DNA of 64,000 bases, taken from IMG/VR virus record IMGVR_UViG_3300012931_000759, positions 62,001-126,000 of that record, one strand, 5' to 3'. Below are positions 2,740 through 17,198 of the stretch, one piece after another (within the stretch, counting starts at the first letter, position 1; each line of letters opens with the position of its first letter). Below the pieces are notes generated by a model that made no database searches, was not told the DNA's origin, and saw only the letters and a program-made list of their open reading frames with translations. The position numbers were made by a program, and so were the translations under genes.

Positions 2740-3321
2740 ATGGAAAAGACAGTCGTGATCGTTGGCGTTGGCGCGCTCGGCTCCCATGTGGTGCTTCTGG
2801 CGCGCAACTGGAAAAACCCCTTGCGTATTGCGGATTTCGACAGAATCGAGACCAAAAATATCCAGTCTCAGTTCCATAGCAAGATGGGACTCGGCAAAAA
2901 CAAAGCGCAGGCGCTCCAGCAAGCCCTACAAGGGCTGTTTGGAGTCAAGGTTGAGGCGATCTCGCACAAGTTGGCGGACGATAACGCCGAGAATTTACTC
3001 AAGTCGGCAACTCTTGTGATCGACTGTACGGATAACATTGCCGCTAGGCGCGTTATTCAGAAGTATGTCAGGAAGCACGACATCCCATGTCTCCACGGGG
3101 CGCTTTCGGCCGATGGGGCTTTCGGGCGCGTCGTCTGGGACGAGCACTTCACCGCCGACGAGGAGGGCAAGGAGGGGCAGGCGACCTGCGAGGACGGCGA
3201 GCAGCTCCCGATGTTTGCGCTCGCGGCGGCCCAGGTGGCGGTCGTCGCCCAGCGGTTCCTGAAGGATGGCACCAGGCAGAGTTTCCAAGTGATGCCTGTG
3301 GGCATAGTGAGGCTGGCATGA
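2740..3321 (+). CDS. ThiF/MoeB/E1-family adenylyltransferase
   Basis: VIVGVGALGS, DFDRIETKN, GKNKA, DCTDN..AR motifs; candidate catalytic Cys in ATCED; no CxxC Zn site. Confidence 0.92.
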   Translation: MEKTVVIVGVGALGSHVVLLARNWKNPLRIADFDRIETKNIQSQFHSKMGLGKNKAQALQQALQGLFGVKVEAISHKLADDNAENLLKSATLVIDCTDNIAARRVIQKYVRKHDIPCLHGALSADGAFGRVVWDEHFTADEEGKEGQATCEDGEQLPMFALAAAQVAVVAQRFLKDGTRQSFQVMPVGIVRLA

Positions 3322-3539
3322 AGATCTTCTACGAGACCCTGCGTGAGTGCCTCGATTCATACCATTGGCCGCAGGAACTGTACGACGAGTTGTGCGATTG
3401 GCTGGAGCGGCACCACTACGCGTCGGACAGGGCCGAACTGGTTCTGAGGCTGGTGCGCGGCATCAAGGACGAGGATGGGAAGGCCTTCGGCGCATTGGCC
3501 AAGGAACTCGAGCAGCTTCTCCATGCCCCCGTGGCATGA
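3318..3539 (+). CDS. hypothetical protein
   Basis: ATG overlaps E1 stop (ATGA); 73 aa. Confidence 0.55.
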   Translation: MKIFYETLRECLDSYHWPQELYDELCDWLERHHYASDRAELVLRLVRGIKDEDGKAFGALAKELEQLLHAPVA

Positions 3540-3640
3540 GGCCTCGCCGCCGGGCTGAAAGGGGCGGACAGAACGAAGGCGGTCCCCGCCAGCCGCCGGA
3601 ACCATGTCCGCCGCGCGCATGGGAAAACAAGCGCGGCTTC

Positions 3641-3714
3641 GCTCCCATCGTCCAGGGGCAGGACGCCGGTCTTTCAAGCCGGAAACGCGGGTTCAATTCC
3701 CGCTGGGAGCACCA
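3641..3714 (+). tRNA. tRNA-Glu(TTC)
   Basis: complete cloverleaf, loop CT-TTC-AA, encoded CCA. Confidence 0.95.
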
Positions 3715-4315
3715 ACAAACCATGGTCGAGTTCCCAATGGTGGTTGCGGCAGAGTCCGATTAGGTTGTCGGGACTGTTTACTGTAACTACGAGGGTGCTC
3801 ATCGGGAAACTCGTGATCGGTTTGATGTGGCAGCATTCTACATGTGTGGAGTAACCGCAGGTAGCGCATCGTTTGAGTTTCCCAAGACTCTTGGCCACAT
3901 TGCGGGCATGTTCCCCCACAATGGATTTGTAGGAGTTGCGCGAACCGCTTGCTGTTGCGACATCCGCCAAGGTGGCATGACCGATCTTTATGAATCGGTC
4001 TTTGCGGCAGTTGTCACAGAATTTCCTTCTCAACGGAATCGATGTTCCGCAGACGGTACAGGCGTTGGTCCGTTCTTTCTTGGGTTTCTCTGCGTTGATG
4101 TACGAGGATGAACAGGATCGACTACAGAATCTGTCGTTTTTCGTGTCTCGTCCACAATTTAGGCACTTGATGGTTGGTTTGTCGCGTGCTGCTCGGAAAC
4201 ACGCCACCGAACAAAAGAGACGCTTGATGCCGCGTTTCATGTTTTTTGCGTACCAGCATTGGGGTCGCGTGAATTCATGGTGGCAATGGTCGCAGATCAA
4301 GGTAACATCGCTCAC
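3674..4315 (-). CDS. HNH endonuclease with Zn fingers
   Basis: AAGGAG RBS with GTG start; CATCG..ECCHIKPI..NLIGLCRNHH. Confidence 0.85.
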   Translation of the reverse strand: MSDVTLICDHCHHEFTRPQCWYAKNMKRGIKRLFCSVACFRAARDKPTIKCLNCGRDTKNDRFCSRSCSSSYINAEKPKKERTNACTVCGTSIPLRRKFCDNCRKDRFIKIGHATLADVATASGSRNSYKSIVGEHARNVAKSLGKLKRCATCGYSTHVECCHIKPITSFPMSTLVVTVNSPDNLIGLCRNHHWELDHGLLVLPAGIEPAFPA

Positions 4316-4329
4316 GGATTATCTCCTTT

Positions 4330-4405
4330 AGGCCCATAGCTCATCAGGAAGAGCGCCTGTCTTACAAGCAGGAGGTGGTCGGTTCGAGTCCGACTGGGCC
4401 TACCA
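4330..4405 (+). tRNA. tRNA-Val(TAC)
   Basis: complete cloverleaf, CT-TAC-AA loop, encoded CCA. Confidence 0.95.
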
Positions 4406-4467
4406 CTAATGGAAAAAGATTGATAGAAGGGCGGATTCCATTTCCGCTTCGCCCATGGAGGAACAAG

Positions 4468-4659
4468 ATGTTCGGAGAACCGGAGGATGTCGAGGGCGAA
4501 TGCAACGCCCGCCTGTACATAGCCGACAATTTCGGGGACAACCACGCCACGATGCGGTGCCAGCTTTCCAAGGGCCATGATGGATCGCACCAGGAGGTGT
4601 TCCATCGCGACGGCGGCGAGGTGCGCGTGACCTGGGAAGGCGACGAACGCGAAGACTAG
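4468..4659 (+). CDS. hypothetical protein
   Basis: GGAGG RBS, 63 aa, fills the gap between tRNAs. Confidence 0.6.
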   Translation: MFGEPEDVEGECNARLYIADNFGDNHATMRCQLSKGHDGSHQEVFHRDGGEVRVTWEGDERED

Positions 4660-4748
4660 CCCCCGTAGCTCAATGGTGGAGCGACAGCCTTATAAGCTGG
4701 GAGCGTCTGATAAACGCAAGGTTGCAGGTTCGACTCCTGCCGGGGGCA
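4659..4748 (+). tRNA. tRNA with TAT (Ile) anticodon and long variable arm
   Basis: GCCCCCG/CGGGGGC acceptor, CT-TAT-AA loop, V-arm GCGT-CTGATAA-ACGC, T arm GCAGG-TTCGACT-CCTGC. Confidence 0.88.
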
Positions 4749-4764
4749 CGAGAGGCGGAAAAAA

Positions 4765-5487
4765 ATGGGAAGCACCATCTTCAGCCTGTGGATAGGCAGG
4801 AGGCTGTCGCTCCTCGAGCGGCTCTGCGCCAAGTCGTTCCTGGCCAATGGACACGACCTGGAGGTCTACGCGTATGGCCCGATCGAGGGAATGCCGGACG
4901 GCGTCAGCATTCTCCCGGCGGCAGACATCCTGCCGGAGAGCCTGATTGGGAGCTACACCTTGCGCGACGGCGAGTTCATGGGCATGGTGTCGCCGTTCTC
5001 CGATCTGTTCCGGCTCAAGGCTCTCCTGGAGCGCGGCGGCACATGGGTGGACCTGGACATCGTCTGCCTTGCCCCGTTCGACTTCCCCGGAACGCACACG
5101 CTCTCGTCCGAGCGCCAGAAGGACGGCCGCACCAAGGTCACCAACTCGGTGATGAGGACTCCCGCCGGGGACGCCTTCGTGGCGAAGTTCCTGGAACGGG
5201 CGATGCGGATCGATCCGCAAACCATCTGGCACCAGGAGCTTGGTTCGAACCTGATCCCGCCGCTTCTGGAGGCCTTCGCTTTGGAGGGGAGCGTCGAGTC
5301 GCCGAACAGGTTCTGCCCGATTGACTGGTGGGAATGGTCGAGGCCGCTCACCGAGCGGTTCGAGTTGCCGTCCGCGGCGCGCGGCCTTCACCTGTGGAAC
5401 TCCTTCTGGGTCGCCAACGGGGCCGACAAGGATCAGCTGTATCCCGAGACGACCCTGTACGGCACACTCCAGAGGAGGTACCTGTGA
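4765..5487 (+). CDS. GT32-like (DXD) glycosyltransferase
   Basis: SLWIG..LS.LE.LC.KSF, FSDLFRL..L..GGTWVDLD, HLWNS. Confidence 0.85.
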   Translation: MGSTIFSLWIGRRLSLLERLCAKSFLANGHDLEVYAYGPIEGMPDGVSILPAADILPESLIGSYTLRDGEFMGMVSPFSDLFRLKALLERGGTWVDLDIVCLAPFDFPGTHTLSSERQKDGRTKVTNSVMRTPAGDAFVAKFLERAMRIDPQTIWHQELGSNLIPPLLEAFALEGSVESPNRFCPIDWWEWSRPLTERFELPSAARGLHLWNSFWVANGADKDQLYPETTLYGTLQRRYL

Positions 5488-6251
5488 GGCGCATCGTCCT
5501 GTTCCGGTTCCATGAGAGGTTCGATGTCTGCCGTGATCGGATCGCGCTGATCAGGAGGCTGAATCCTGGCGTGCCGGTGTACGGGCTCTACGGCGGCAAG
5601 GAAGGCTTCGAGAACGAGTTGACCGACCTGATCCCGGTGTACGCGCCGTCCCTCTCCAACCAGTTCACCCCTAGCCGGACGAGCTGGATGTGGAAGCACA
5701 ACGATCTCGGGATCAGGGCCTGGTTCGCGATGTTCGGGCGCGACCTGGAGTTCGACATGCTCCATGTGATCGAATGGGACCTGCTGATCCTGGAGCCTCT
5801 GGAGAAGGCCTTCGCGGCCGTGCGCGGGGACGAAGTCGGGTTGACAGGCCTGAGGCCGCTTTCGGCCGCTCCTCCGAGCTGGCCGTGGATGAGGACCGAG
5901 CCCCCTGTCAGCGAATGGAAAGGCCTGCTGGCCGCCGTGAGGGCCGAGTTCGGGTACAGCCAGACCCCGCTCGCCTGCCAAGGGCCGGGGATGTGCTTTC
6001 CGAAGGCGTTCCTGGAGCGGTATACGGACGCTCATGTGCTCCAGCTCTGCCACGAGGAGTTGCGACTCCCGCTGTACGCGCAATGTTTCGGATTCAGAGT
6101 GGTGGACACCGGGATCACCAGGGATTGGGTGACTCCGTTCTTCAACTGCCAGAAGCGCGGAGTCCATCGCCGGACGGTGGACGGGGAACTGGCCAAGCCG
6201 GATGGGTGCCGCGTGTTCCATCCGTTTTTCGAGGTGTTTGGGGGACCATGA
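5484..6251 (+). CDS. putative glycosyltransferase-like protein
   Basis: GTG overlapping upstream stop; IEWDLL (ExD-like) and C-terminal FHP; adjacent to GT32. Confidence 0.5.
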   Translation: MRRIVLFRFHERFDVCRDRIALIRRLNPGVPVYGLYGGKEGFENELTDLIPVYAPSLSNQFTPSRTSWMWKHNDLGIRAWFAMFGRDLEFDMLHVIEWDLLILEPLEKAFAAVRGDEVGLTGLRPLSAAPPSWPWMRTEPPVSEWKGLLAAVRAEFGYSQTPLACQGPGMCFPKAFLERYTDAHVLQLCHEELRLPLYAQCFGFRVVDTGITRDWVTPFFNCQKRGVHRRTVDGELAKPDGCRVFHPFFEVFGGP

Positions 6252-6769
6252 ACATCTTCGCTGTCGATCCCGATCCCATTGTCTCGGCAAAGTCGCTGGT
6301 CGACAGGCACGTCGTCAAGATGATCCTGGAGTCGGTCCAGCTGATGTGCGTCGCGCACGCGGTCCATGGGCCGGTTCCCGAAGGCGTTTGGGACAGCCTC
6401 GGATGGCGGCACCACCCGTGCGCCAAGTGGACTGCGGCTTCTCTGTCCAACTACCGATGGCTGCTCGCGCACGCGGAAGGCCTGTGCGCCGAGTACCGGC
6501 ACCGGTACGGCAGGACGCACAAGCTGGAATCGGACGGGATGCTGGAAAGGCTGGCCGCAGCACCGCCGATATCGGATATCGGCCCGACGCCGTTCGCCGA
6601 GGCCACCGGAGACATCCACGATGGCGAGCCGGTGGCGACCTACAGGCGGTACTACATCGAGCACAAGAGTCACCTGATGGTCTGGACGCGGCGAGAGCCC
6701 CCGGACTGGATCAGGGCGGCCATGGCCGTCTCCAGGCAGGGGGACAGGTGGCTGGCCAAGCGGAGATGA
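6248..6769 (+). CDS. pyrimidine-dimer DNA glycosylase/endonuclease V-like family protein
   Basis: MNIF..D.DP..A..HVVKMILES.Q, HHPC.KW..S.NYRWL, EY..RYG..HK. Confidence 0.75.
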   Translation: MNIFAVDPDPIVSAKSLVDRHVVKMILESVQLMCVAHAVHGPVPEGVWDSLGWRHHPCAKWTAASLSNYRWLLAHAEGLCAEYRHRYGRTHKLESDGMLERLAAAPPISDIGPTPFAEATGDIHDGEPVATYRRYYIEHKSHLMVWTRREPPDWIRAAMAVSRQGDRWLAKRR

Positions 6770-6770
6770 C

Positions 6771-7172
6771 ATGGACAAGGAACTCGACAAGCAGCTGTGC
6801 CTGGAATGCCCGAACCTGTACGCCGACCGGAACCTCTCCATCATGCAGACGTGTATGGCGTGGGGGTTCGACTGCATGGACGGGTGGTTCCCCATCATCC
6901 GCGACCTGTCGCTGAAGCTGGAGGCGATCATCGCCGCGATGCCGGAAGGTGAGCGCGGGGGATACAAAGCCGCCCAGGTCAAGGAGAAGTTCGGCACGCT
7001 GCGGTTCTACATGACCGCCGAGACCGACGAGATGGAGCGGCTCATCGGCGAGGCCGAGAGCGCTAGCGCCAGGACCTGCGAGTACTGCGGGCAGCCGGGA
7101 AAGCTGCGGACCAAGGGCTGGTTGTTCACCCTGTGCGACAAGTGTGACGAGGAGCGGCCATGGCGGAAGTGA
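6771..7172 (+). CDS. conserved phage protein (QVKEKFGTLRFY family)
   Basis: GWF..I, QVKEKFGTLRFY, TCEYCG..TLCDKC. Confidence 0.7.
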   Translation: MDKELDKQLCLECPNLYADRNLSIMQTCMAWGFDCMDGWFPIIRDLSLKLEAIIAAMPEGERGGYKAAQVKEKFGTLRFYMTAETDEMERLIGEAESASARTCEYCGQPGKLRTKGWLFTLCDKCDEERPWRK

Positions 7173-8041
7173 TGGACATCGTCCTCGACATGGAGACCGG
7201 CGATCCCGACGACTTCATGACCCTGCTGCTCCTGTTGGGGCACCCGAGGTCGAACCTGAAGGCCGTCACGGTGACGCCCGGCACGAGGGAGCAGATCGGC
7301 CTGGTCAGGTGGGCATGCGCCCAACTCGCGCCGGGCCGGTACATCCCGGTCGGCGCGTTCGACCCCACGCGGGACAAAAAGTGCGTCTCCTCCTGGCACT
7401 ACGAGGTCTACGGGCAGATCCCACCCAAGGATCCGGACGACCGGGGCGGTTTCGTCCTCAAGCGGTGCTGCGACGAGAACACGACGCTCGTCACCGGCGC
7501 GCCTCTGCGGAACATCGGCGTGGCGATGGACCTGGACTTCAGGGTCGGCCGATGGGTAGCGCAGGGCGGATTCGCGGGCGAGGGCGTGGTGCCGCCGGAG
7601 CGGCAGCTGGAGAAGTTCCGGGGCATGGTCGTCTGTCCGACCTACAACCTGAACGGCGACCCGAAGGCGGTCCTGCGAGCCCTGGAGTATGGTGGGATAG
7701 GACACAGGCGGTTCGTCTCCAAGAACGTCTGCCACGGAGTGGTGGCCGACCGCGCGCTGGTCGACAGGGTCGGGGCGGCGAAGACTCCGCATCTGGAACT
7801 GATCCACAGGGGCATGGAGGCCTACCTGTCCAAGGGACCGGTCGGCAAGAAGGCCGGAAAGAAGCTCCACGATCCGCTGGCGGCCTGCTGCGCGCTGACA
7901 CCGGAGATAGGGGAATGGGCCGAGGTCAAGCTGTTCCGGGAGAAGGGCCAGTGGGGCAGCGCTTTGAAGCCAGGCACGAACACCTGGATTATCACAGGTT
8001 TTGACAAAGAACGGTTCGTTTCAGTCCTAACTGAAGTTTGA
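7160..8041 (+). CDS. inosine-uridine nucleoside hydrolase family protein
   Basis: DMETGDPDD, TGAPLRN, YNLNGD, LHDPLA. Confidence 0.85.
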   Translation: MAEVMDIVLDMETGDPDDFMTLLLLLGHPRSNLKAVTVTPGTREQIGLVRWACAQLAPGRYIPVGAFDPTRDKKCVSSWHYEVYGQIPPKDPDDRGGFVLKRCCDENTTLVTGAPLRNIGVAMDLDFRVGRWVAQGGFAGEGVVPPERQLEKFRGMVVCPTYNLNGDPKAVLRALEYGGIGHRRFVSKNVCHGVVADRALVDRVGAAKTPHLELIHRGMEAYLSKGPVGKKAGKKLHDPLAACCALTPEIGEWAEVKLFREKGQWGSALKPGTNTWIITGFDKERFVSVLTEV

Positions 8042-8116
8042 GGTTTCAACACTTGGGAATCTATCATTATTCTGACATTAGTACTAGGAACATCTTAATA
8101 GTATTAGGAGGAATGT

Positions 8117-8803
8117 ATGAGACGGTTCACAGACAAGGAACTCAGCCAAGCGGTTAAGGACAGCCTATTCCTATTCCAGGTGATCCATAAGTTGGATCTG
8201 AACCCGAGCAAAACAACCTACTCGCGCATCAGGCACCTGATTCTCAAACTCGGTCTGGACACTTCGCATTGGACAGACGCCAGGACGATTCGGATCCTGC
8301 CTGACGAGCAAATTTTCGTCAAAGGATGCCGTGTTCCGCCTTCAACCGTGCGAAGGCGTTATGCGCAATTGGGACAGCCGTACCAATGTGCCGAATGCGG
8401 AATTTTCGAATGGCGCGGAGTTCAGTTGATTCTGGAATTGGATCACAAGAATGGAGATCGCAAGGACAACAGACTAGACAATCTGCGATGGCTGTGTCCA
8501 AATTGCCATAGCCTGACTTCGACATATTGCGGCAAAAATAAACCCCTACTGAAAAAGATCACTCATTGTGTCGAATGTGGAACGGCGGTTTCTAGGTATG
8601 CGACCAGGTGTCGACGATGCGCTGGCAATCTGATCGGCGCCACACGGATGAAGATCGAATGGCCTTCTGTTGACGATCTGATTCTGATGCTACAGAGAGA
8701 TTCATTGGCTACTGTGGCCGCACAGTTGGGCGTTTCATCTGCCGCTGTGAGAAAACATTTACTACATCGTCGCGGAGGGAAGAAAAATCCCAATGTGGCG
8801 TAA
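8117..8803 (+). CDS. HNH endonuclease with C-terminal HTH
   Basis: CAECG..LELDHKNGD..DNRLDNLRWLCPNCH. Confidence 0.9.
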   Translation: MRRFTDKELSQAVKDSLFLFQVIHKLDLNPSKTTYSRIRHLILKLGLDTSHWTDARTIRILPDEQIFVKGCRVPPSTVRRRYAQLGQPYQCAECGIFEWRGVQLILELDHKNGDRKDNRLDNLRWLCPNCHSLTSTYCGKNKPLLKKITHCVECGTAVSRYATRCRRCAGNLIGATRMKIEWPSVDDLILMLQRDSLATVAAQLGVSSAAVRKHLLHRRGGKKNPNVA

Positions 8804-8807
8804 GCAT

Positions 8808-8880
8808 GCCCCCGTAGTCTACTGGATGAGGCGCTCGGCTACGGACCGAGTTTAAGCAGGTTCGATTCCTGCCGGGGGTA
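8808..8880 (+). tRNA. tRNA-Arg(ACG)
   Basis: cloverleaf, CTCGG-CT-ACG-GA-CCGAG. Confidence 0.9.
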
Positions 8881-8884
8881 CAAT

Positions 8885-9007
8885 TCAGGGATAGTTCAAG
8901 GGTAGAACGGACGGCTGTGGGCGTTCCTGCGGCCAGGGTTGTGGTGGGTCGGCACCGCCGATGCCCCTAACCGTCAAATGGGGGTTCGAATCCCTCTCCC
9001 TGAGCCA
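8885..9007 (+). tRNA. tRNA-Asn(GTT) interrupted by a 49-nt insert (8919-8967)
   Basis: TCAGGGA/TCCCTGA acceptor, G73, CCA; removing 8919-8967 restores GACGG-CTGTTAA-CCGTC. Confidence 0.85.
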
Positions 9008-9020
9008 GAAAGGAGTCGGC

Positions 9021-9404
9021 ATGACACCAGGATCCGTTGTCGAACTCGAGCTGGACCAGCCTCGGAACCAATGGCTTGCCAGGCCGGGCGCCCGCGCCGT
9101 GATCGTCGATGGCAGGAAGCGGTTTCCGGATCTCTACGACCGGCTGGAGGAGTACCTTCGCAATTTCGGGCAGCCCGATGAGGACATCAAAGAGTTCATC
9201 TGGGTGGTGTGGGAACGGGCGGACAAGCGGTGGAACGGCCAGGCCGACGGGGCGTACACGAGGTACAGGTTCAGGGAGGTCCCGAAGGGACCTGAACCCA
9301 AGAACAACGATGGACGGACGGTCTGCTTCTGGTGCAAGGGATCGACGGAGACCAAGCAGGGCTTCACCTCGTCCTACAACATCTGCCCGAAGTGCGGGAA
9401 GTGA
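9021..9404 (+). CDS. hypothetical protein with C-terminal Zn ribbon
   Basis: AAGGAG RBS; CFWC..CPKC. Confidence 0.65.
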   Translation: MTPGSVVELELDQPRNQWLARPGARAVIVDGRKRFPDLYDRLEEYLRNFGQPDEDIKEFIWVVWERADKRWNGQADGAYTRYRFREVPKGPEPKNNDGRTVCFWCKGSTETKQGFTSSYNICPKCGK

Positions 9405-9407
9405 CGG

Positions 9408-9683
9408 ATGAGGAAGGTTGAGGACTCCAGATTCTACGAGATGTTCCAGGAGATCGACCGGTTCGTCGCCGAGCTCCGCAAAAGGTATGGCGGCGGGCAG
9501 GACTCGATCGCCGACTCGTTGATGGCCCTGTGCCTGATGGTCGCGAAGGTGCTCTCGCACGAGGGGCTTCCGGCCAGCGTGGCCGAGGAGTACATTGCGA
9601 GCTTCACGCGGTTCATCGACTCGGTTTCCGGCAAGGAGGGCGCGAGTCCGCTGGACAAGCTGATCGGGAAGGGAAGCAACTGA
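9408..9683 (+). CDS. hypothetical protein
   Basis: packed + strand ORF. Confidence 0.55.
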   Translation: MRKVEDSRFYEMFQEIDRFVAELRKRYGGGQDSIADSLMALCLMVAKVLSHEGLPASVAEEYIASFTRFIDSVSGKEGASPLDKLIGKGSN

Positions 9684-9684
9684 C

Positions 9685-9763
9685 GCGAGGGTGGTGTAAT
9701 GGCAGCCACGCCACGCCAGGTCGAGAGCCTGGACAGGTGCCGATTCGAATCCGGCCGGGAGCA
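9685..9763 (+). pseudogene. chimeric tRNA pseudogene (GAG anticodon arm)
   Basis: D arm, anticodon arm and T arm present, but acceptor strands GCGAGGG and CGGGAGC do not pair; tandem ACGCC at the junction. Confidence 0.6.
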
Positions 9764-9777
9764 CAAGGAGAAGTCGC

Positions 9778-10110
9778 ATGGCCGAGCAGGAGAGGCATTT
9801 CGTCCAGCTGATGGAGCTGTTCGCGAAGCAAGGCATTCCCGCCATCCCCATGGATCAGGTCAGGCAGACTGGGGACAGTTGGAACTTCGAGGTTTTCGGC
9901 GAGCGCGGATCAATCATCACCTACCGGCTGTGGGGTCTTGGGATCGTGAATGTCTGGATGGGCAAGGCCGATTTGGACTCCGGCGGCCTGGCGATGCAGG
10001 GCCAGGTCCCGAACGGGGTCGAGCACATCCTCAGGCTCCACAAGCGTTTTGCGACCTCCGGCCGCCGCAAAGTGCTTCGCAGGGCTGAGCGCGCTCCGTA
10101 CGGATTGTAG
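9778..10110 (+). CDS. hypothetical protein
   Basis: AAGGAG RBS. Confidence 0.6.
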   Translation: MAEQERHFVQLMELFAKQGIPAIPMDQVRQTGDSWNFEVFGERGSIITYRLWGLGIVNVWMGKADLDSGGLAMQGQVPNGVEHILRLHKRFATSGRRKVLRRAERAPYGL

Positions 10111-10115
10111 TTTGC

Positions 10116-10190
10116 GCCCCCGTAGCGCAAATGGCAGGAGGCACCGGTTTTAAAAACCGGACAGTGCCGGTTCAAATCCGGCCGGGGGCA
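10116..10190 (+). tRNA. tRNA-Leu(TAA) with short variable region
   Basis: GCCCCCG/CGGGGGC acceptor, CCGGT-TT-TAA-AA-ACCGG, V region ACAGT only. Confidence 0.85.
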
Positions 10191-10203
10191 TGAGGAGACG
10201 GCG

Positions 10204-10674
10204 ATGATCAGCGCGAACTGGAAAAACGGGCAGGGCCACGAGCTGGTCCTATGTTACGAGGAGAAGACGACGGGCGGCGGAATCTGCAAAGGCCAAGAGC
10301 ACCAGCTCTGGCCGGACTATGAGCCGCTCTACTACGAGGTGGCGCTCTTGTCCCTTCACAGGCCGGATTTGAAGCAGCTTTCGTGGAACTGTGAAACGGT
10401 CTACGCCCAGTTCAATCCGACCAAGGCCAAGCGCGCACATCTAGTGGTTGTCAAATATCAAGACGGCGACACCTTCGGGACATCCCATGGGAATGTCTAT
10501 ATCGAGGGAGCATATCGGACAAAAAAGGAAGCCGATAGGATTGCCAAGAGCATCGAGGACGATATCTACAAGGGAGGCTACAAGGCCTGGAGTAGATATT
10601 TCAAGAGCCTAGAAGAGTGTCGAGGTTGTCTCCTTCGACATAGAAAAGTGAGGTTGTCGGCTGTAGAGGAATAG
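10204..10674 (+). CDS. hypothetical protein
   Basis: AGGAG RBS; 3' end possibly frameshifted. Confidence 0.6.
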   Translation: MISANWKNGQGHELVLCYEEKTTGGGICKGQEHQLWPDYEPLYYEVALLSLHRPDLKQLSWNCETVYAQFNPTKAKRAHLVVVKYQDGDTFGTSHGNVYIEGAYRTKKEADRIAKSIEDDIYKGGYKAWSRYFKSLEECRGCLLRHRKVRLSAVEE

Positions 10675-10727
10675 CTCCCTAGCGCCCTAGTACAGCGTCC
10701 ACAGCGGTTTGATTCCGCCAGCCGACT
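10656..10727 (+). ncRNA. tRNA-like RNA with 8-bp acceptor and 4-bp T stem, aberrant anticodon arm
   Basis: GTCGGCTG/CAGCCGAC; GCGG-TTTGATT-CCGC; GAG-GAATAG-CTC D-like arm. Confidence 0.5.
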
Positions 10728-10739
10728 CAGGAGGTCAAG

Positions 10740-11057
10740 ATGAACGATTGGTTCGCGGAGGCGCTCGAGGCATGCGCATTAGGCAACCAGGACAAGGCGC
10801 TTGACATCGTCTACGACATCGTGGATAATATGTTGTTGTCGGCAAGATTTGACGACGCCGACCAGGCATTGCGAGAGATTGACGTGCCCAACACGCCAAT
10901 AGTGATCCTGGTTGGATTGCTGACGATCACCTTGTTGGCCAATGATCGCCTGCCGTCGCGCTCAGCGTTTTTCGAGGCTGTCCGGGCCGAATGTATTGCG
11001 CGCGGACGGACGGGTACCGACCAGTTGCTTAAAGGGCTTGACATGGAAATGCGATGA
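10740..11057 (+). CDS. hypothetical protein
   Basis: GGAGG RBS. Confidence 0.6.
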   Translation: MNDWFAEALEACALGNQDKALDIVYDIVDNMLLSARFDDADQALREIDVPNTPIVILVGLLTITLLANDRLPSRSAFFEAVRAECIARGRTGTDQLLKGLDMEMR

Positions 11058-11665
11058 TCGAGGCTCTTTCGATACCTGGATGGATGAGTTGCGACGAGTG
11101 CCAGGAGTTGTACGGCCTGGCTATGTCCGCCAACGGACCAATCCTGGAGATCGGGCATTTTCTAGGCCGATCCACTGCCTGTATCTGCGCGGGCATCCGG
11201 GACTCTGGGCGCGGAAACTCTTTTCGGTCGTACGATCTCGGATTCCGTACGGACGCAGAGTTTCGGGAGTTTTACGACAGGATCCACCAGCGGCCAACGC
11301 CGGTGCCCGACCTTCACCAGCAGGTGTTCCAGAGCGGCCGCATCTCAACAGACATCGCAAGGGAGAACTTGGAACGATATGGTCTGGTAGGGTTCGTAGA
11401 ACTTGTTAGCGGGAATTTCATCGAATTGGACAGGGACCGGTACGCCTTCGTGTTCTGTGATGCCGTCCATGAGACAAACGAGATCCGGCACAACCTGCCA
11501 CATATCATGGAGCGTAGCGCGTCGTCAGCTGTCTGGGCATTCCATGACATGTACGGCATAAATGCGACGCTAGTCGAAGAGTTGTCGGGGGCGCGGCTGG
11601 TTGAGCGGGTGGGAAGTTTAGGCATTTTTAACTACATTGGACAGCACTCTGACGAGGCCTTTTGA
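11054..11665 (+). CDS. class I SAM-dependent methyltransferase (Methyltransf_24-like)
   Basis: IPGWMS..E, ILEIGHFLGRST, FVFCDAVH, AFHD. Confidence 0.85.
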   Translation: MIEALSIPGWMSCDECQELYGLAMSANGPILEIGHFLGRSTACICAGIRDSGRGNSFRSYDLGFRTDAEFREFYDRIHQRPTPVPDLHQQVFQSGRISTDIARENLERYGLVGFVELVSGNFIELDRDRYAFVFCDAVHETNEIRHNLPHIMERSASSAVWAFHDMYGINATLVEELSGARLVERVGSLGIFNYIGQHSDEAF

Positions 11666-11709
11666 CTGTTAATCTGGTGAGGTGGTTCGATTCCCGTTGG
11701 GTTACACGT

Positions 11710-11774
11710 GGTTCCATCGTTCAGCCTGGCCTAGGATATCGGCTTGTTACGCCGAAGACAGGTCCATGGGACCG
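11710..11774 (+). pseudogene. tRNA-Asp-like remnant (GTT anticodon, T arm deleted)
   Basis: GGTTCCA/TGGGACC acceptor, Asp-type D arm, TCGGC-TTGTTAC-GCCGA, no TTCGA loop. Confidence 0.6.
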
Positions 11775-11955
11775 CAAGAAATGTACAATGGGGATTGTTG
11801 TCCAATACCACAAGGAGGATAATGATGCTGGAGTTTTTCGCCAATCTATGGCAAAGTAATACTGGCAACAAGGTCATGCTGATTGTCGGCGCCCTGATTT
11901 TCCTAGTGGCCATTGTCGGGGTTGTCTACGGCATCTGTTCTTGAACAATGATCGT

Positions 11956-11998
11956 TGCGGGATAACCAATAGGTAAGGCAACGGACTTCATAATCCGG
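11956..11998 (+). pseudogene. 5' part of a tRNA-Met(CAT)-like gene
   Basis: TGCGGGA..D-like arm..CGGA-CTTCATAA-TCCG; no T arm or 3' acceptor strand. Confidence 0.45.
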
Positions 11999-12016
11999 AA
12001 ACAATGGTTTTATAAT

Positions 12017-12106
12017 GGAAGGCCCGTCAGGCATTGGTGCCCTGTGCGCGCCCGCTAAGCGCGTGGGGATTAACCTCCCCTAGCAGTTCGATTCTGCTGC
12101 CTTCCG
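12017..12106 (+). tRNA. tRNA-Ser(GCT), non-canonical C8/C33
   Basis: GGAAGGC/GCCTTCC with G73, CC-GCT-AA loop, V-arm GGGGA/TCCCC, T arm. Confidence 0.8.
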
Positions 12107-12221
12107 ATGGATTTTGGTGGGTACATTTTGTGTTGGTTTTAGGTGTGCGGCTCGAATTTGCGTGGGTCTGAAATATGGTTCCGTCTATTCAACTTATACA
12201 CCCACCACCAAGGAGAAAAAC

Positions 12222-12407
12222 ATGAGTGGCGTATTCATCCACAAGAAGACCGGCAACAAGTATGTGGTCATTGGCGAGTGTCTGAATTGTACGAACGCCC
12301 AGGATGGCCAGGAGATGGTGGTCTATTCTAGGGGCGGAAAAGTGTTCGTCCGGGAGAAATCGGAATTCCTGAAGAAGTTTGTCCCGGAGAAGGTCGATGG
12401 GGAATAG
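12222..12407 (+). CDS. DUF1653-like small protein
   Basis: H.K.GNKY.V..NCTN..MVVY..VFVR..EF..KF. Confidence 0.7.
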   Translation: MSGVFIHKKTGNKYVVIGECLNCTNAQDGQEMVVYSRGGKVFVREKSEFLKKFVPEKVDGE

Positions 12408-12410
12408 TCG

Positions 12411-12623
12411 ATGTGGATCAACAGGAAGGAATTCAGGGAGCTGGCCGCAAGGGTCGACGAGCTTGTCGCCACGGCGACTGAAACAGGCAGTTGGGCTCTT
12501 GTAAACCCCGGCCAGGACAACGAGGCCAATAGGTTCTACAAGCTTTTGTGGGCCCACATGGATCTACGGATAGCGTTGTCGGCTCTGGCCGGCAAGCTGG
12601 AAGCTATAGCTACGAGGTGGTAG
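12411..12623 (+). CDS. hypothetical protein
   Basis: packed + strand ORF. Confidence 0.5.
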   Translation: MWINRKEFRELAARVDELVATATETGSWALVNPGQDNEANRFYKLLWAHMDLRIALSALAGKLEAIATRW

Positions 12624-12962
12624 ATGACCGAAGAACAGAGGGAACTCAAGATTTCGGAACTCGACAGCACGCTGTTCAAGCCGTACTGGGGGATCATCAT
12701 CGCTATTTCGAAAACGGTGATTCGCAGGGTACAGGCCCTGCTCGGGATGCCCGAGATGGAGGCAGTTTTATTTGTAGCTAGGCGGTACGCGGAGGTGGAT
12801 CTGCCGGAATCCATCGACGGCATGACGGATGACCTGTATGTGTCCAGAAGCATTGATTTCGAGTCCCAGATGGTGCTGCTCAGCATTACCTCGATAACGG
12901 AGAGGAAGGGCATGTATGCCATCACGCCGGGCTTTAAATATCCGCAGAAACAAGTGTATTGA
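12624..12962 (+). CDS. hypothetical protein
   Basis: GAGGT RBS, packed. Confidence 0.55.
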   Translation: MTEEQRELKISELDSTLFKPYWGIIIAISKTVIRRVQALLGMPEMEAVLFVARRYAEVDLPESIDGMTDDLYVSRSIDFESQMVLLSITSITERKGMYAITPGFKYPQKQVY

Positions 12963-13037
12963 CATGGACGCCTTTGCCATCGCATGGGCGATGGCTAAAG
13001 AGGATCTCAAGATCCTGCTGAGGGTGATGGCCGAAAG

Positions 13038-13445
13038 ATGCCGAGAAAGACCAGCGAGGAAATCAGGAAAAACTACCGGAAAAGGTTGAACTTGCCGGAG
13101 TTTCCGCCGGATGGCGAGCTGGTCAGGTTCATGACGAAATCCGGCACCCTCATTGCCGTCGGCTACGAGCGCGTCGTTATTGGCGACCGTGGGCCGTACA
13201 TCGAGTTCGCGCCTGGCCGCATCATGAAGGTTGGCTGGAACATTCCGGCCCACCAAAAGTGGCGCATCAAAGGCCAATGCTACTATGTCGAAGGGCGCAC
13301 TTTGGACGAGGCCAACGTCAAGATGTACTACCAGAAGGCGACGGTTGGATACGCTGACTACAGGGTTGGGATGTGGTACATCTCGCCGTTCGACCTGACG
13401 ACCGACCAATGGCCGATGCTGGTCGCCCCGCTGGAGGGGCGGTAA
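13038..13445 (+). CDS. conserved hypothetical protein
   Basis: GYERVVIGDRGPYIEF..YYQKATVGYADY..GMWYISP looks like a conserved family. Confidence 0.65.
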   Translation: MPRKTSEEIRKNYRKRLNLPEFPPDGELVRFMTKSGTLIAVGYERVVIGDRGPYIEFAPGRIMKVGWNIPAHQKWRIKGQCYYVEGRTLDEANVKMYYQKATVGYADYRVGMWYISPFDLTTDQWPMLVAPLEGR

Positions 13446-13563
13446 TGTCATGTATTTCGACGACGACTGCCCCAGCCACGACTACAATGAGTGCGACGAC
13501 AACGGGAAATGCGCCCTACAGGCGAAGGCGGCCAGGTTCGTCAAGTAGCTTGACCTGCTCTGG

Positions 13564-13742
13564 GCGGATGCTGAACTCGAGGACATTCCGCTGTTTGAGT
13601 CGCTGGTGCTTAGGGAAATCCTATGGACGTTCGCGAAGCGGTGTCCGCATTTCAAGGGGAAAGACTAAGGGTATGGCCGTCCTACATTGGCGCCAGCGTG
13701 TGGAATAACGTCCCTGGGGATTCGAGTCCCTCCATCCGTACC
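13564..13742 (+). ncRNA. 179-nt tRNA-Leu-like RNA with expanded D and anticodon arms
   Basis: GCGGATG/CATCCGT then ACC; T loop TTCGAGT; 8-bp GCTGGTGC/GCGCCAGC stem enclosing TTAG and several hairpins. Confidence 0.6.
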
Positions 13743-13752
13743 GAGGTGAACT

Positions 13753-14058
13753 ATGGGCTGGGCAAACAACGCCATCAAGGAGCTCTTGGCTGGCAACACC
13801 GTCCAGATCCGCCCCAAGGGCAATTCTATGAGGGGGCGGATCGAGAGCGGCCAGCTAGTGACCATCGCGCCATGCGTTCCCGGCGACATCGAGATTGGCG
13901 ATGTAGTGCTTGCCAAGGTCAAGGGGCGCGTGTTTCTACATCTGGTCGGGGCTGTCGCGGACGCCAAGCGGAAACGCATGTTCTTGATCAAGAACAACCG
14001 GGGCCGGACCAATGGATGGACCGGCACGGTCTACGGCAAAGTCGTTAAGGTTGAGTAG
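13753..14058 (+). CDS. S24/S26 peptidase-like protein
   Basis: KGNSM..I.SG..V..GDVVL..LHLV. Confidence 0.75.
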   Translation: MGWANNAIKELLAGNTVQIRPKGNSMRGRIESGQLVTIAPCVPGDIEIGDVVLAKVKGRVFLHLVGAVADAKRKRMFLIKNNRGRTNGWTGTVYGKVVKVE

Positions 14059-14070
14059 AAAGGGAAAGCT

Positions 14071-14662
14071 ATGGACTCCGCTATTTACGGGAAAAGCAAG
14101 GCCAAGACCGGTATCACGCCAGCGATCATCCTAGTCAACCCTAAATTTCCCCACAATGTAGGCGCGGCCCTCCGGGCAGCATCCTGTTTCGGGGTCGGCC
14201 AAGTGTGGTACACGGGTGATCGGGTGGCAATGGAGTTGGAGAAGAAACGTCGGTTGCCGCGAGAAGAACGTATGCGTGGTTACAAAGATGTGGCTTTGCG
14301 CCAGTTCGACTATCCTTTCGAAGTTTTCGAAAACGATGTCACGCCTGTGGCCGTAGAATTGCGACCGAATTCGGAATTGCTTCCACAGTTTGTCCATCCT
14401 GAAAAAGCCGTGTATGTGTTCGGGTAGCATCCCGCAGGTTTGCCTGCGCCATTGCCACCGCTTTATCGTTATCCCGACGCACCACTGTGTCAACCTGTCG
14501 GCGGCCGTGTACCTGATCTTATACGACAGACTGGTGAAGCGCCAGGCTGCCGGGTTGGAGCCGGTCCTGCCGATGGACGATGTCCTGAGGGAGCAGCGCG
14601 GACCAGTCGTCGGCGGAGGCAAGTTGTACGGCCACGGCGGCGAGTCCGACGTGGAGATCTGA
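14071..14662 (+). pseudogene. SPOUT (TrmH/TrmL-like) RNA methyltransferase, frameshifted
   Basis: NPKFPHNVGAALRA; VYVFG* then GSIP..CVNLSAAVYLILYDR in another frame; the GPE motif is deleted. Confidence 0.85.
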
Positions 14663-14673
14663 AAGGGAAAACG

Positions 14674-15086
14674 ATGCGACTCACAGCCATCCTGTTCGTC
14701 ATGCTGCTGGCGTCCTGCGCGGCGCCATCGCCAACACGCCGCCTCCGGCGGCTGCCGAGCAGCCCAAGCCGAAGCCGTCGTGCGTGGAGCAGGTGCGCGA
14801 CATCCTGAAGCACGAGGCGGACATCCGGTTCGGGGACAGCATCGCCGACACGGTGGCGGAGCAGAACGATCTTGGGAACTGGCGCATCGTGGTGACGGAC
14901 GATTGTCTGGCCCTTCGTTCCACGGATGGGCATATCCTGATGAAGGACGGCATTTTGTACGATGCTTTTGGAGGATCGCCCGTGTTGACCAGCCGCAGGG
15001 CCAAGGAGCGGCTTGCCAGGGTTTTCGCCTGCCGCGTGGCGCATCTGCAGAGCATGGCGGCCGGAACCCCGGATTGCTCGAAATGA
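14674..15086 (+). pseudogene. probable frameshifted lipoprotein
   Basis: signal peptide with lipobox LLASC from ATG 14674; globular part continues in another frame (14784-15086). Confidence 0.45.
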
Positions 15087-15202
15087 GGTCGCGATGAGGA
15101 TTTTGCTGGTTCTGTTCGCCCTGCTGGCCGGTTGTGTCGGACAGGGCGTGAAGTCGGTTCCGAAAGATGCCCGGCCTGCGGCCGGATGCCCGAGATAGGG
15201 GC

Positions 15203-15231
15203 TTGACAAGCGGTTGCGCCTCGGGTAGATT
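15203..15231 (+). promoter_or_regulatory. sigma70-type promoter
   Basis: TTGACA-17 nt-TAGATT upstream of the 15283 gene. Confidence 0.65.
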
Positions 15232-15282
15232 GTTACTGGATCGGCAACGGTCCGCCCAAAACGGCAACCGCCGGAGGAGAAC

Positions 15283-16071
15283 ATGGACAACGACTCGATC
15301 TCGAAGCAGTTCGCCCGCATGGGCGCCCGGGCCAAGGTCCGGGAGATCACACGCGACGGCGGGCCAGACTACGTGCTGGACGTCAGGCGCGACAAGCAGG
15401 GGGAGTTCTACGACATCGGCCTTCGGGACGGCGAGTGCGACCTACAGGTCATCAACGTCGACCTCGACGACAGGCATATGGTGGTGCTGTTCAAGGACGA
15501 CAGTGGCAACAAGGACCGGTACCTCTGCGGGCACGACGAGCGCAGCTGGTTCGTGGCGGCAGTGCCCAACGGGGCCAACACGGTCTTTGAGGCCAAGGAG
15601 GCGCTCAAGCCCGCCCAGGCCCGCGAGAGCCAGGAGAGGAAGCGTGTCCGGAAGAACAAGCGGAATAAGCGCCACAATGCCGGTTATCTACGCCAAGGAG
15701 AGTGGTTTCTGATTCCCGCACCTGATCTGGTGGTGGATGAGAAGCTGATCATCCGGAACGAACCAATCCGGCGTGGCCGGGGTAAGGCGCACATGGTGGA
15801 GGAGGTTTTCCGGCGCAACGGCAAGACGGTGTACGTCAACCGTGAGCATCCCAACGGGATTGGAGAGAAGGCATACCGTAAACTGCTTGCTGATGATCCC
15901 AGCCAGGCCTCCAAGGGCTGGCGGCAGATGGTGCGGAATGCCGAGGTCTACGGACGCGGAAAGATGAGCCATCCGGACCATGCCACTATCGAACTGCCTG
16001 GTTGGCACAGAATCGTGCCCAATACCGAGAGCAGCGCAAGCTGGTCGACCAGCATGACTTTCCTGGATTGA
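15283..16071 (+). CDS. conserved hypothetical protein (RQGEWF..HPDH..LPGWH family)
   Basis: GGAGGAG RBS, own promoter, 262 aa. Confidence 0.7.
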   Translation: MDNDSISKQFARMGARAKVREITRDGGPDYVLDVRRDKQGEFYDIGLRDGECDLQVINVDLDDRHMVVLFKDDSGNKDRYLCGHDERSWFVAAVPNGANTVFEAKEALKPAQARESQERKRVRKNKRNKRHNAGYLRQGEWFLIPAPDLVVDEKLIIRNEPIRRGRGKAHMVEEVFRRNGKTVYVNREHPNGIGEKAYRKLLADDPSQASKGWRQMVRNAEVYGRGKMSHPDHATIELPGWHRIVPNTESSASWSTSMTFLD

Positions 16072-16141
16072 CAGACGTTCCCGCCGTGTTTTTTCATCCC
16101 ATTGTTTTGCGTCCCGTATTCGGGACGCCGGGACGGGGTTT

Positions 16142-16215
16142 CGGGCAGAGGGCTTGATGGAAAGCCGCTGGTCCTGGGCATCAGAGTTGTGCGGGTTCGA
16201 CTCCCGCCTGCCCGA
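16142..16215 (+). tRNA. tRNA-Pro(TGG), non-canonical A8/C33
   Basis: CGGGCAG/CTGCCCG with A73, CTGGT-CC-TGG-GC-ATCAG, perfect T arm. Confidence 0.8.
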
Positions 16216-16291
16216 CCGATTTTCTTGGCATTTTTGTGGGCGTGTCCGACAACGTGGTACGTAAACACCTGCGAGTAAAGGAATCACAGCA

Positions 16292-16537
16292 ATGAAATCT
16301 CGCTGTTGGCAAATGTGGGAACGAGTCGCATATTCCATTCCAAACCTAAACTATGGTGAAGCTTTTTCGTGTGAGGAGGCTGAGACCATGGTGCGCACCG
16401 GAACTCACAGATGGAAATTCGGGCAAGGCGGCGTGCTGGCATGTGTCCCGGCGGATTCAAAATTATTGATGTGGGAATCGTGGCTACAAGAAACCTCGCC
16501 AGGCCGGTTTGAGGTTGTCGAAACGAGGCTGTCATGA
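16292..16537 (+). CDS. hypothetical protein
   Basis: packed ORF coupled to the next gene. Confidence 0.5.
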   Translation: MKSRCWQMWERVAYSIPNLNYGEAFSCEEAETMVRTGTHRWKFGQGGVLACVPADSKLLMWESWLQETSPGRFEVVETRLS

Positions 16538-16881
16538 CCTACGCCTGCGCGCACCGCCTGCGGCGGGGCAACGACATCATTGGGGCCTCCGGCGGCCAGG
16601 AATGGGCGCTCAAGGAGCCAGAGTCCGGTGTCCCACTTCCGCCTTTGGAGTGTTTCTTCCCGGCACGGAACGAGGGCCAACTCAACGGGACGCTCGATGT
16701 GTGGTTGTTCCGCACCAAAGAGATCCAGGAGCTGCCGCGCGAGGAGTGGATCGGGACGATCACATTCTCGTCGGACATGCCGCGCCATCGCGACTGCTGG
16801 ATCGACGGGCAGGAGCACATCATGATGCGCATCTGCCTGGATGGGCACGAACCGGGCGAAGAGGAGCTGCGCCGTGAGTAA
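16534..16881 (+). CDS. hypothetical protein
   Basis: GAGG RBS, ATGA overlap. Confidence 0.55.
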   Translation: MTYACAHRLRRGNDIIGASGGQEWALKEPESGVPLPPLECFFPARNEGQLNGTLDVWLFRTKEIQELPREEWIGTITFSSDMPRHRDCWIDGQEHIMMRICLDGHEPGEEELRRE

Positions 16882-16946
16882 ATGTCCTCTCTTGTAAAGA
16901 AATTGAATATGGTGCGAATCCGTACGGTGGCTTCATGAGGTGATCC

Positions 16947-17198
16947 ATGGTCAAGAAAAAGGAAAAGTTCTACTGCCAATGCGAGCTTGCCCGTCCCACT
17001 GAACTGGGTCGTCAGCTTATGACTTCCTGGATTCCTGAGGAGATTGCCAAGGTCGGACTTACAGTTAGACTCAAGGGCGAGGATGAGGAGTGGACGGATG
17101 GTTGGCTCGTGCTGGCTGTGTATAATAGGCTGCCATTTTCGTATCTGAAGAAGCGCGACCGGGACCACATCAACCAGAGGAAAGTAAGCGATGTCTAG
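16947..17198 (+). CDS. hypothetical protein
   Basis: GAGGTG RBS. Confidence 0.6.
   Translation: MVKKKEKFYCQCELARPTELGRQLMTSWIPEEIAKVGLTVRLKGEDEEWTDGWLVLAVYNRLPFSYLKKRDRDHINQRKVSDV

Follow-up and report, generated by a model that had tools for sequence, protein, structure and literature searches.

Can a tRNA gene of a bacterial phage, interrupted within its own anticodon by an insert of only 49 nt, still encode a functional tRNA, and if so, what kind of element is the insert? This question is raised by a long tRNA gene in a 64,000-nt stretch of DNA (referred to here as the window) comprising bases 62001-126000 of the 340,392-bp IMG/VR virus record IMGVR_UViG_3300012931_000759, a jumbo phage estimated by CheckV to be 84% complete. 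The gene lies in a cluster of tRNA genes interspersed with small ORFs. A first-pass annotation made from the sequence alone had described it as a tRNA-Asn whose anticodon is split by a structured insert, and had proposed that the insert is a new protein-spliced mini-intron, a shield against anticodon nucleases, or a tRNA scaffold displaying an RNA domain. Textbook tRNA introns come in two kinds, i.e., the self-splicing group I introns of bacteria and organelles and the bulge-helix-bulge (BHB) introns of archaea and eukaryotes, which are cut by a dedicated endonuclease. As described below, the insert fits neither.

The insertion splits the anticodon of a tRNA-Asn gene

We first asked whether the interrupted gene is a genuine tRNA. 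The Rfam tRNA model (RF00005) matched 8885-9004 end to end, covering model positions 1-71 with a single large insertion in the anticodon loop, at 51.7 bits against a cut-off of 29 (E about 7e-9). In contrast, ARAGORN with default settings did not report the gene, and with introns allowed reported a tRNA-His(GUG) with a 49-nt intron, which is a wrong splice register. From this one sequence alone, the splice register and hence the anticodon are ambiguous.

To fix the insertion point, we used a conserved ORF that starts 14 nt downstream of the tRNA, has no Pfam family, and has ten metagenomic homologs, as an anchor for retrieving related loci (given L numbers here). Eight of these loci carry a long tRNA of the same kind just upstream of the ORF, and a ninth, L018, which is nearly identical to the window, was missed by ARAGORN. 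Locus L013 carries two ordinary tRNA-Asn(GUU) genes, one with exons identical to the insert-bearing gene of loci L005 and L006 and the other matching the exons of the insert-bearing gene of locus L009. The alignment of these intronless twins leaves no freedom: the insertion lies between CUGU and UAA, between anticodon nucleotides 35 and 36, and its removal restores the 7-nt loop CUGUUAA. The exons have U1:A72, discriminator G73, and an encoded CCA, the bacterial tRNA-Asn pattern, and the gene is therefore tRNA-Asn(GUU) and not tRNA-His.

The first-pass observation is thus confirmed, with its coordinates exact (Table 1). The closing stem and the first hairpin are as it gave them, and its statements that no BHB is present and that the site is not 37/38 are both correct. 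The second hairpin, however, is in a different register, with covariation supporting GGUGG/CCGCC around a 7-nt loop rather than GUGGUG/CACCGC.

Table 1. Features of the tRNA-Asn locus (coordinates are those of the window)
Coordinates	Strand	Feature	Support
8117..8803	+	Free-standing HNH homing-endonuclease gene just upstream; candidate helper for spread of the insert at the DNA level (inferred)	Pfam HNH_3 and HNH hits; homologs next to insert-bearing tRNA-Asn in L016, L017, L163, L196, L169, L192 and L180, with a remnant in L009
8808..8881	+	tRNA-Arg(ACG), 3 nt upstream in the same tRNA cluster	Conserved in relatives
8885..8918	+	Exon 1 of tRNA-Asn(GUU): acceptor 5' strand, D arm, anticodon stem 5' strand, loop nucleotides C32 U33 G34 U35	Rfam tRNA alignment; alignment with intronless twins
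8919..8967	+	49-nt insert (intron) between anticodon nucleotides 35 and 36	Intronless twins; family of about 38 distinct inserts at the same site
8919..8925	+	P1 5' strand (GGGCGUU), acceptor-like stem	Pairs with 8960-8966; covariation; G1 invariant across the family
8926..8937	+	P2 hairpin, CCUG-cggc-CAGG (8926-8929 with 8934-8937); optional in the family	Compensatory changes in L018 (CCCG/CGGG) and L180 (UCUG/CAGA)
8943..8959	+	P3, T-arm-like hairpin: GGUGG, 7-nt loop GUCGGCA, CCGCC (8943-8947 with 8955-8959); directly abuts the P1 3' strand	Helix 91-100% paired with compensatory changes
8960..8967	+	P1 3' strand (GAUGCCC, 8960-8966) and 1-nt tail (C, 8967) preceding the 3' junction	Covariation of P1
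8968..9007	+	Exon 2: U36 A37 A38, anticodon stem 3' strand, variable loop, T arm, acceptor 3' strand, G73 and encoded CCA	Rfam tRNA alignment; alignment with intronless twins
9021..9404	+	Conserved downstream ORF of 127 aa, unknown function	Anchor used to find related loci

The insertion belongs to a widespread phage-borne family

We next asked whether the insertion is unique to this genome, since uniqueness together with a lack of covariation had been set beforehand as grounds for rejecting it. A pattern built from the shared flanks found 30 viral contigs and 65 metagenome contigs, and gave 89 matches in a scan of one genome from each of about 185,000 prokaryote species. Only three of those 89 are true copies, and these sit on short or unplaced MAG contigs; the remaining matches, about 86 in the prokaryote genomes and 16 of the 65 in metagenomes, were chance matches or two adjacent tRNAs. 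Each insert was removed in silico and ARAGORN was asked for tRNA-Asn, which left about 85 copies in phage or metagenome contigs, representing 44 unique genes and 37 distinct inserts of 45-54 nt, all at CUGU^UAA. A relaxed scan that did not force the first two insert bases added one more type, for about 38 in total, and showed that the first base is always G. A covariance model of the insert found exactly one copy in each large insert-bearing phage genome tested, always in tRNA-Asn, and none in G001, a complete 441-kb genome that is the closest large relative of the window (80% identical nucleoside hydrolase) and that has the neighbouring tRNA-Arg but no copy of this tRNA or insert.

Carriers come from soil, river, and lake samples and range from GC-rich contigs like that of the window to AT-rich contigs found in freshwater and riverine samples, and include two complete genomes of 340 kb and 296 kb. 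Megablast and blastn searches of 50,697 isolate phage genomes with the window region, the tRNA, and an AT-rich family member found nothing, such that no cultured carrier was identified, and an exact-match scan of viral contigs for exon 2 of the window likewise found nothing. The recurrence of the same kind of insert at the same site in dozens of independent assemblies is nevertheless far more than chance.

Covariation supports a miniature tRNA fold

All members share one plan. An invariant G1 opens a 5' strand that pairs with a 3' strand near the end of the insert (P1), and directly before that 3' strand lies a hairpin with a 4-5 bp stem and a 7-nt loop (P3). Between the P1 5' strand and P3 there is either a small hairpin (P2) or a plain linker, and after P1 there is a tail of 1-4 nt. 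In the alignment of the 37 distinct inserts, P1 plus P3 are 83.9% paired, as compared to 58.4 +/- 1.6% in shuffles (0 of 500 reach the observed value) and 30-56% when the partner strand is slid, with 132 doubly changed cells against 43 expected. The GC-rich subset alone gives 92.3% paired, and P3 as well as P2 shows compensatory changes in L018 and L180. Few positions outside the T-loop and G1 are conserved.

The P3 loop is UUCGAUU, UUCAAGN, UGCAAAU, or similar in nearly all members, which is the T-loop consensus, and loops of the form [U/G][U/G]C[A/G][A/G]NN are general. Its closing pair is G:C in 36 of 37 inserts, like G53:C61 of tRNA. The window, L018, and L180 have GUCGGCA instead, which departs from the consensus. 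If 5 T-stem positions and then 7 more are counted after the loop, G1 falls opposite the twelfth position in every member, and positions 2-5 of P1 are paired in 35-36 of 37, although G1 itself faces A or G rather than C in 24 of 37. The insert is thus a D-armless miniature tRNA, i.e., a 7-position acceptor-like stem coaxial with a T arm, a feature that the first-pass annotation did not recognize and that is the main clue to how the insert may be excised. We would like to note that the thermodynamic minimum-energy fold of the window RNA is a different structure, which unfolds the anticodon stem and lies 5 kcal/mol lower (-54.5 against -49.5 kcal/mol for the proposed fold); the comparative data favour the proposed fold.

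The insertion fits neither textbook class of tRNA intron nor a known ribozyme

To assess whether the insertion could be a known type of intron, we compared it to each class in turn. Group I introns in tRNA anticodon loops, such as those of cyanobacterial tRNA-Leu(UAA) and Azoarcus tRNA-Ile, likewise occur in a bacterial-lineage context, interrupt the anticodon loop, and show presence/absence polymorphism and mobility, but they are self-splicing ribozymes of about 200-250 nt with a conserved P1-P9 core. At 45-54 nt, the present inserts have no room for such a core, no Rfam intron family matched in 3000-17000 at E up to 1, and the terminal G expected of a group I intron is lacking, as the last nucleotide is C in the window and varies among A, G, C, and U across the family. 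No Rfam match overlapped the insert at E up to 1, including the small self-cleaving ribozymes (hammerhead, twister, pistol, hatchet, HDV-like, and hairpin), and no CUGANGA...GAAA core is visible in the sequence.

BHB introns, which are cut by EndA/TSEN and rejoined by RtcB or Trl1, are also short, ORF-less, and located in or near the anticodon loop, and the present insert is presumably likewise cut by proteins and rejoined by a ligase. However, a BHB requires both junctions to lie in 3-nt bulges separated by a 4-bp helix, and none of the 37 inserts can form that central helix in any of eight registers, the maximum being 3 of 4 pairs. No splicing endonuclease (tRNA_int_endo, PF01974) was matched in four insert-bearing phage genomes. 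The bacterial-type tRNA and phage context, the 35|36 site, and the tRNA shape of the intron itself are further differences.

In the literature we were able to search, the only report of introns in phage tRNA genes concerns the Lak megaphages (Devoto et al. 2019, PMC6784885, Table S6), where they were called enigmatic, one was noted as possibly encoding a tRNA itself, and no mechanism, family definition, or RNA evidence was given; we found no later explanation of them. Like the present family, the Lak introns are inserts in the anticodon loops of phage tRNA genes, occur as alleles with and without the insert, and have no Rfam match. Our reading of the Table S6 sequences shows that the Tyr and Phe introns end in a 7-bp acceptor-like stem and a T arm with a canonical T-loop, followed by a tail of about 3 nt, with 15-16 nt separating the T-loop from the predicted 3' junction. 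In contrast, the Lak introns are 79-93 nt long, sit in Tyr, Phe, Gly, and Thr tRNAs, were predicted at about 37/38, and carry roughly 25 extra nucleotides 5' of the tRNA-like part. The family found here is therefore the same kind of object in its minimal form, specific to tRNA-Asn position 35|36, beginning exactly at the acceptor-like stem, and found across many unrelated phage contigs; it is defined here as a family with a fixed site, a supported fold, a broad distribution, and RNA-level support.

RNA evidence for removal in one family member

As no RNA run was listed for the window's own sequence, we turned to an AT-rich member, L143 (tRNA 5619-5744, insert 5653-5703), for which 24 RNA runs were listed, and aligned the contigs of four metatranscriptomes to L143:5300-6100. 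In one of these, run X3, a 301-nt contig of depth 470 matches 5393-5650 and 5702-5744 without a single mismatch and skips 51 nt; the 2-nt ambiguity at the joint includes 5652|5704, which is the exact insert. In the same run, the insert region has depth 2.4 and the neighbouring genes about 9.5, so the joined form is about 200 times as deep as the unjoined form and about 50 times as deep as neighbouring genes. The other three runs hold only the unjoined form, at about 10-12.

Intronless DNA alleles with this very junction do exist in four viral contigs. For two of them (L204 and L206), the flanks align to L143 at only 80-86% identity, and the other two gave no alignment longer than 150 nt, whereas all 17 DNA contigs with flanks at least 95% identical to L143 carry the insert. 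The simplest reading is RNA splicing of an insert-bearing genotype. This evidence is nevertheless a single assembled contig in one run, and an intronless strain with identical flanks cannot be strictly excluded. The insert is widespread and covaries, and the grounds set beforehand for rejecting it do not apply. We are fairly confident that the family is removed at the RNA level and highly confident that it is a conserved, site-specific, tRNA-shaped insert family.

Presence/absence alleles and neighbouring HNH endonucleases suggest mobility

Alleles with and without the insert, having identical exons, exist in two different tRNA-Asn backbones that sit side by side in related phages: the insert is in the first gene in L005 and L006, in the second gene in L009, L011, and L016, and in neither gene in L013. 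Identical inserts occur in exons that differ at 9 of 72-74 positions, and identical exons carry inserts that differ at 4-7 of 48 positions, a mosaic that fits lateral spread or recombination rather than purely vertical descent. At the DNA level the element behaves as a mobile or losable insert specific to this site. The adjacency of HNH genes to the insert-bearing tRNA, seen in at least seven loci besides the window (Table 1), is suggestive only, as these genes are multi-copy in these phages. It is a hypothesis that the insert may spread as the cleavage-resistant allele of such an endonuclease.

A proposed route of excision and its alternatives

The first-pass interpretation is partly supported: of its three options, a protein-spliced mini-intron fits the evidence, given the identical exons of alleles with and without the insert, the conservation of both halves of the anticodon loop in every copy, the absence of a ribozyme or group I signature, and the joined RNA. 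Our data neither support nor bear directly on an anticodon shield or a tRNA display scaffold, although the precise restoration of a normal CUGUUAA loop argues against a permanent display scaffold. A 12-position acceptor/T stack with a T-loop closed by G:C, G at +1, and U at -1 is the classic minimal substrate of RNase P, and the same stack positions RNase Z at the 3' side. The insert has these features, with U35 fixed by the anticodon, and the 5' junction of every insert lies exactly where RNase P would cut. Our best, though tentative, reading is that the element is an ORF-less, mobile, protein-spliced intron, that the precursor folds as a normal cloverleaf with the mini-tRNA sitting on the anticodon loop, that RNase P cuts between U35 and G1, and that an RNase Z-like or other tRNA 3'-end activity cuts just after the tail. 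Such cuts would leave a 3'-OH on exon 1 and a 5'-phosphate on exon 2, held together by the tRNA body and facing each other in the anticodon loop, where an ATP-dependent RNA ligase of the T4 Rnl1 type would seal them. The existence of the insert, its exact site, family, fold, and presence/absence alleles, and a joined RNA form in one relative rest on direct observation, whereas cleavage by these enzymes at the two junctions, the identity of the enzymes, the chemistry of the cut ends, and the route of mobility are inferences.

There are partial precedents for such a route. In mascRNA from MALAT1, mitochondrial tRNA punctuation, and tRNA-snoRNA precursors, a tRNA-like fold embedded in a longer transcript defines the cut sites and the acceptor/T minihelix is the recognised unit, but the flanks are not rejoined, whereas here they are the two halves of another tRNA's anticodon and must be ligated precisely. 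In phage T4, Pnkp and Rnl1 repair an anticodon-loop break made by PrrC, but that break is host-inflicted damage to a host tRNA, whereas here it would be a programmed step in maturing the phage's own tRNA. An Rnl1-family gene is present in both complete insert-bearing genomes examined and absent from the complete insert-free G001. Within the assembled part of the window's genome, in contrast, we found no Rnl1, RtcB, or RNase Z-like gene, and a weak RNA_ligase hit there proved to be an ATP-dependent DNA ligase domain in a large protein. RtcB and Lactamase_B_2 (RNase Z-like) were not found in the phage genomes examined, and an AAA_33 kinase, present in phages both with and without the insert, is uninformative.

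Further points weaken this model and keep alternatives open. The tail is 1 nt in 8 inserts (including that of the window), 2 nt in 10, 3 nt in 2, and 4 nt in 17, so that a single rule for the 3' cut is not evident and a simple RNase Z cut after the discriminator would explain only the 1-nt class; the constant 16-nt distance from the T-loop to the 3' junction in the AT-rich class may simply reflect shared ancestry and is not counted as independent evidence for a molecular ruler. The 5' leader of the Lak introns would be left attached to exon 1 by an RNase P cut. The imperfect pairing of G1, the divergent T-like loop of the window, and the lower-energy alternative fold also count against it. A serious rival, although we consider it less likely, is that a dedicated and still unrecognised phage- or host-encoded endonuclease reads the mature tRNA body or the loop junctions and leaves 2',3'-cyclic phosphate and 5'-OH ends, which host RtcB, or Pnkp plus Rnl1, would join, with the mini-tRNA shape serving stability, modification enzymes, mobility, or a function of the excised RNA. 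The variable tail alongside an always exact junction with U36, the Lak leader, the commonness of RtcB in bacteria (it matched 10 of 14 control genomes), and AAA_33 kinases that could be Pnk-like fit this view. However, no EndA-like or RtcB gene is present in four insert-bearing phage genomes, no candidate nuclease was identified, and the view does not explain why the 5' junction always coincides with position +1 of the stack or why G1 is invariant.

It is unlikely, in our view, that the insert is never spliced and is instead a small mobile or repeat element that has inactivated the tRNA gene or converted it into a tRNA-like decoy or scaffold with an extended anticodon arm. The existence of intronless alleles, the single RNA contig, which would then come from an intronless strain, and the lack of a ligase in the window's genome leave room for this, but the exons remain high-scoring tRNAs, and the CUGU and UAA halves are intact in every copy, including the 8 found through a neighbouring gene rather than through the sequence pattern. 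Moreover, the joined RNA has flanks 100% identical to insert-bearing DNA, and this is the only convincing tRNA-Asn in the window's genome, the only other ARAGORN Asn call there being a doubtful intron-allowed prediction. A new small ribozyme built around a T-loop module, or a degenerate group I intron, is very unlikely: the compact, conserved structure, the invariant G1, the conserved loop, and a 5' exon ending in U, as at group I splice sites, speak for it, but the size, the variable last nucleotide, the lack of Rfam matches, and the sparse conservation speak against it. An archaeal-type BHB intron at a non-canonical position, suggested by a size and position that resemble some archaeal tRNA introns, is refuted by the BHB test, and the lack of a splicing endonuclease gene in the phage genomes and the bacterial-type exons also count against it.

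If the proposed route is right, splicing can be built entirely from ubiquitous tRNA-processing enzymes plus a ligase, which bears on how introns arise and on what phage RNA ligases are for. It is possible, though doubtful on present evidence, that these inserts represent a third mechanistic class of tRNA intron, a mobile miniature tRNA that inserts into the anticodon of tRNA-Asn in phages of bacteria and is excised by the cell's own RNase P and RNase Z before an Rnl1-type ligase seals the loop. Phage RNA ligase 1 would then have a routine maturation role in addition to damage repair, and the Lak introns would be accounted for. The failure of default ARAGORN at this locus also bears on how tRNA gene finders miss phage tRNAs.

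Other long tRNA genes in the same genome

A second anticodon-loop insert occurs in this genome at 56024-56139, and scans for relatives of it found none. Four other long tRNA-like genes, at 53.5-59.1 kb, were considered as carriers of anticodon-loop inserts of the same kind, but on inspection their extra sequence lies in the variable region, making them a separate matter.

Additional atypical tRNA genes

A second tRNA of this phage's own genome, encoded upstream of the window and with its splice register and anticodon unresolved, was found to have a 44-47 nt insert in the anticodon loop. This insert is a 7-bp acceptor-like stem plus a T arm (GUUGG-UUCGAUU-CCAAC) identical to the T arm of the first of four tRNA-like genes described below, and its design is the same as that of the tRNA-Asn insert but in a different tRNA. 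No relatives were found in viral contigs.

These four tRNA-like genes (36-43 bits, one found by ARAGORN only) carry 40-60 nt of structured extra sequence in the variable region and share a motif, i.e., CUGCUUC, then CUCGG, then GAAGC followed by CACA-A/C-GC. A homolog of the third lies in the large relative G001, where a 7-nt loop AUUUGGA suggests anticodon UUG. The tRNA-Ile(UAU) has a 19-nt extra stem-loop (GCGU-cugauaa-ACGC) in the variable region, which is unusual for a class I tRNA, and a further high-scoring tRNA has the loop CUAUGGA, that is, anticodon AUG with an unmodified-looking A34, which would be an odd tRNA-His. tRNA-Ser(GCU) scores only against the tRNA-Sec model, and tRNA-Pro(UGG) is borderline. 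Several tRNAs of this phage are atypical.

Features of the window, the rest of the phage genome (sections L002 and L213) and relatives
Feature	Source	Coordinates	Bits
tRNA-Ile(UAU)	window	4659-4749	61
HNH endonuclease	window	8117-8803	
tRNA-Ser(GCU)	window	12016-12107	32 (tRNA-Sec model, below cut-off)
tRNA-Pro(UGG)	window	16142-16217	30.2
tRNA-like gene, first	own genome (L002)	53583-53699	
tRNA with second anticodon-loop insert	own genome	56024-56139 (L002 6024-6139)	50.8
tRNA-like gene, second	own genome (L002)	57872-57978	
tRNA-like gene, third	own genome (L002)	57983-58115	
tRNA, loop CUAUGGA	own genome	58145-58219 (L002 8145-8218)	61.6
tRNA-like gene, fourth	own genome (L002)	58988-59126	
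ORF with DNA ligase domain	own genome	about 170084 onward (L213 3084-6500)	110 (PF01068)
Homolog of third tRNA-like gene	G001	80438-80574	
Sigma-70 promoter, near-consensus	L143	5446-5475	
Second tRNA-like gene	L143	5530-5611	

Other genes and related loci

HNH endonucleases of one family, seen in the window and in loci L010, L139, and L003, are multi-copy in these phages (three copies within 8 kb in L010) and are often next to tRNA genes. Elsewhere in the phage's own genome, an ORF of more than 1139 aa begins with an ATP-dependent DNA ligase domain, while the remainder has no Pfam match.

The AT-rich relative L143 has a near-consensus sigma-70 promoter (TTGACA, an 18-nt spacer, TATAAT) ahead of the tRNA pair, and a second tRNA-like gene of L143, just upstream of the insert-bearing tRNA-Asn, has the loop UUGUUAC, again a GUU anticodon. 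Parts of L143 5381-5488 reach depths above 1000 in two metatranscriptomes.
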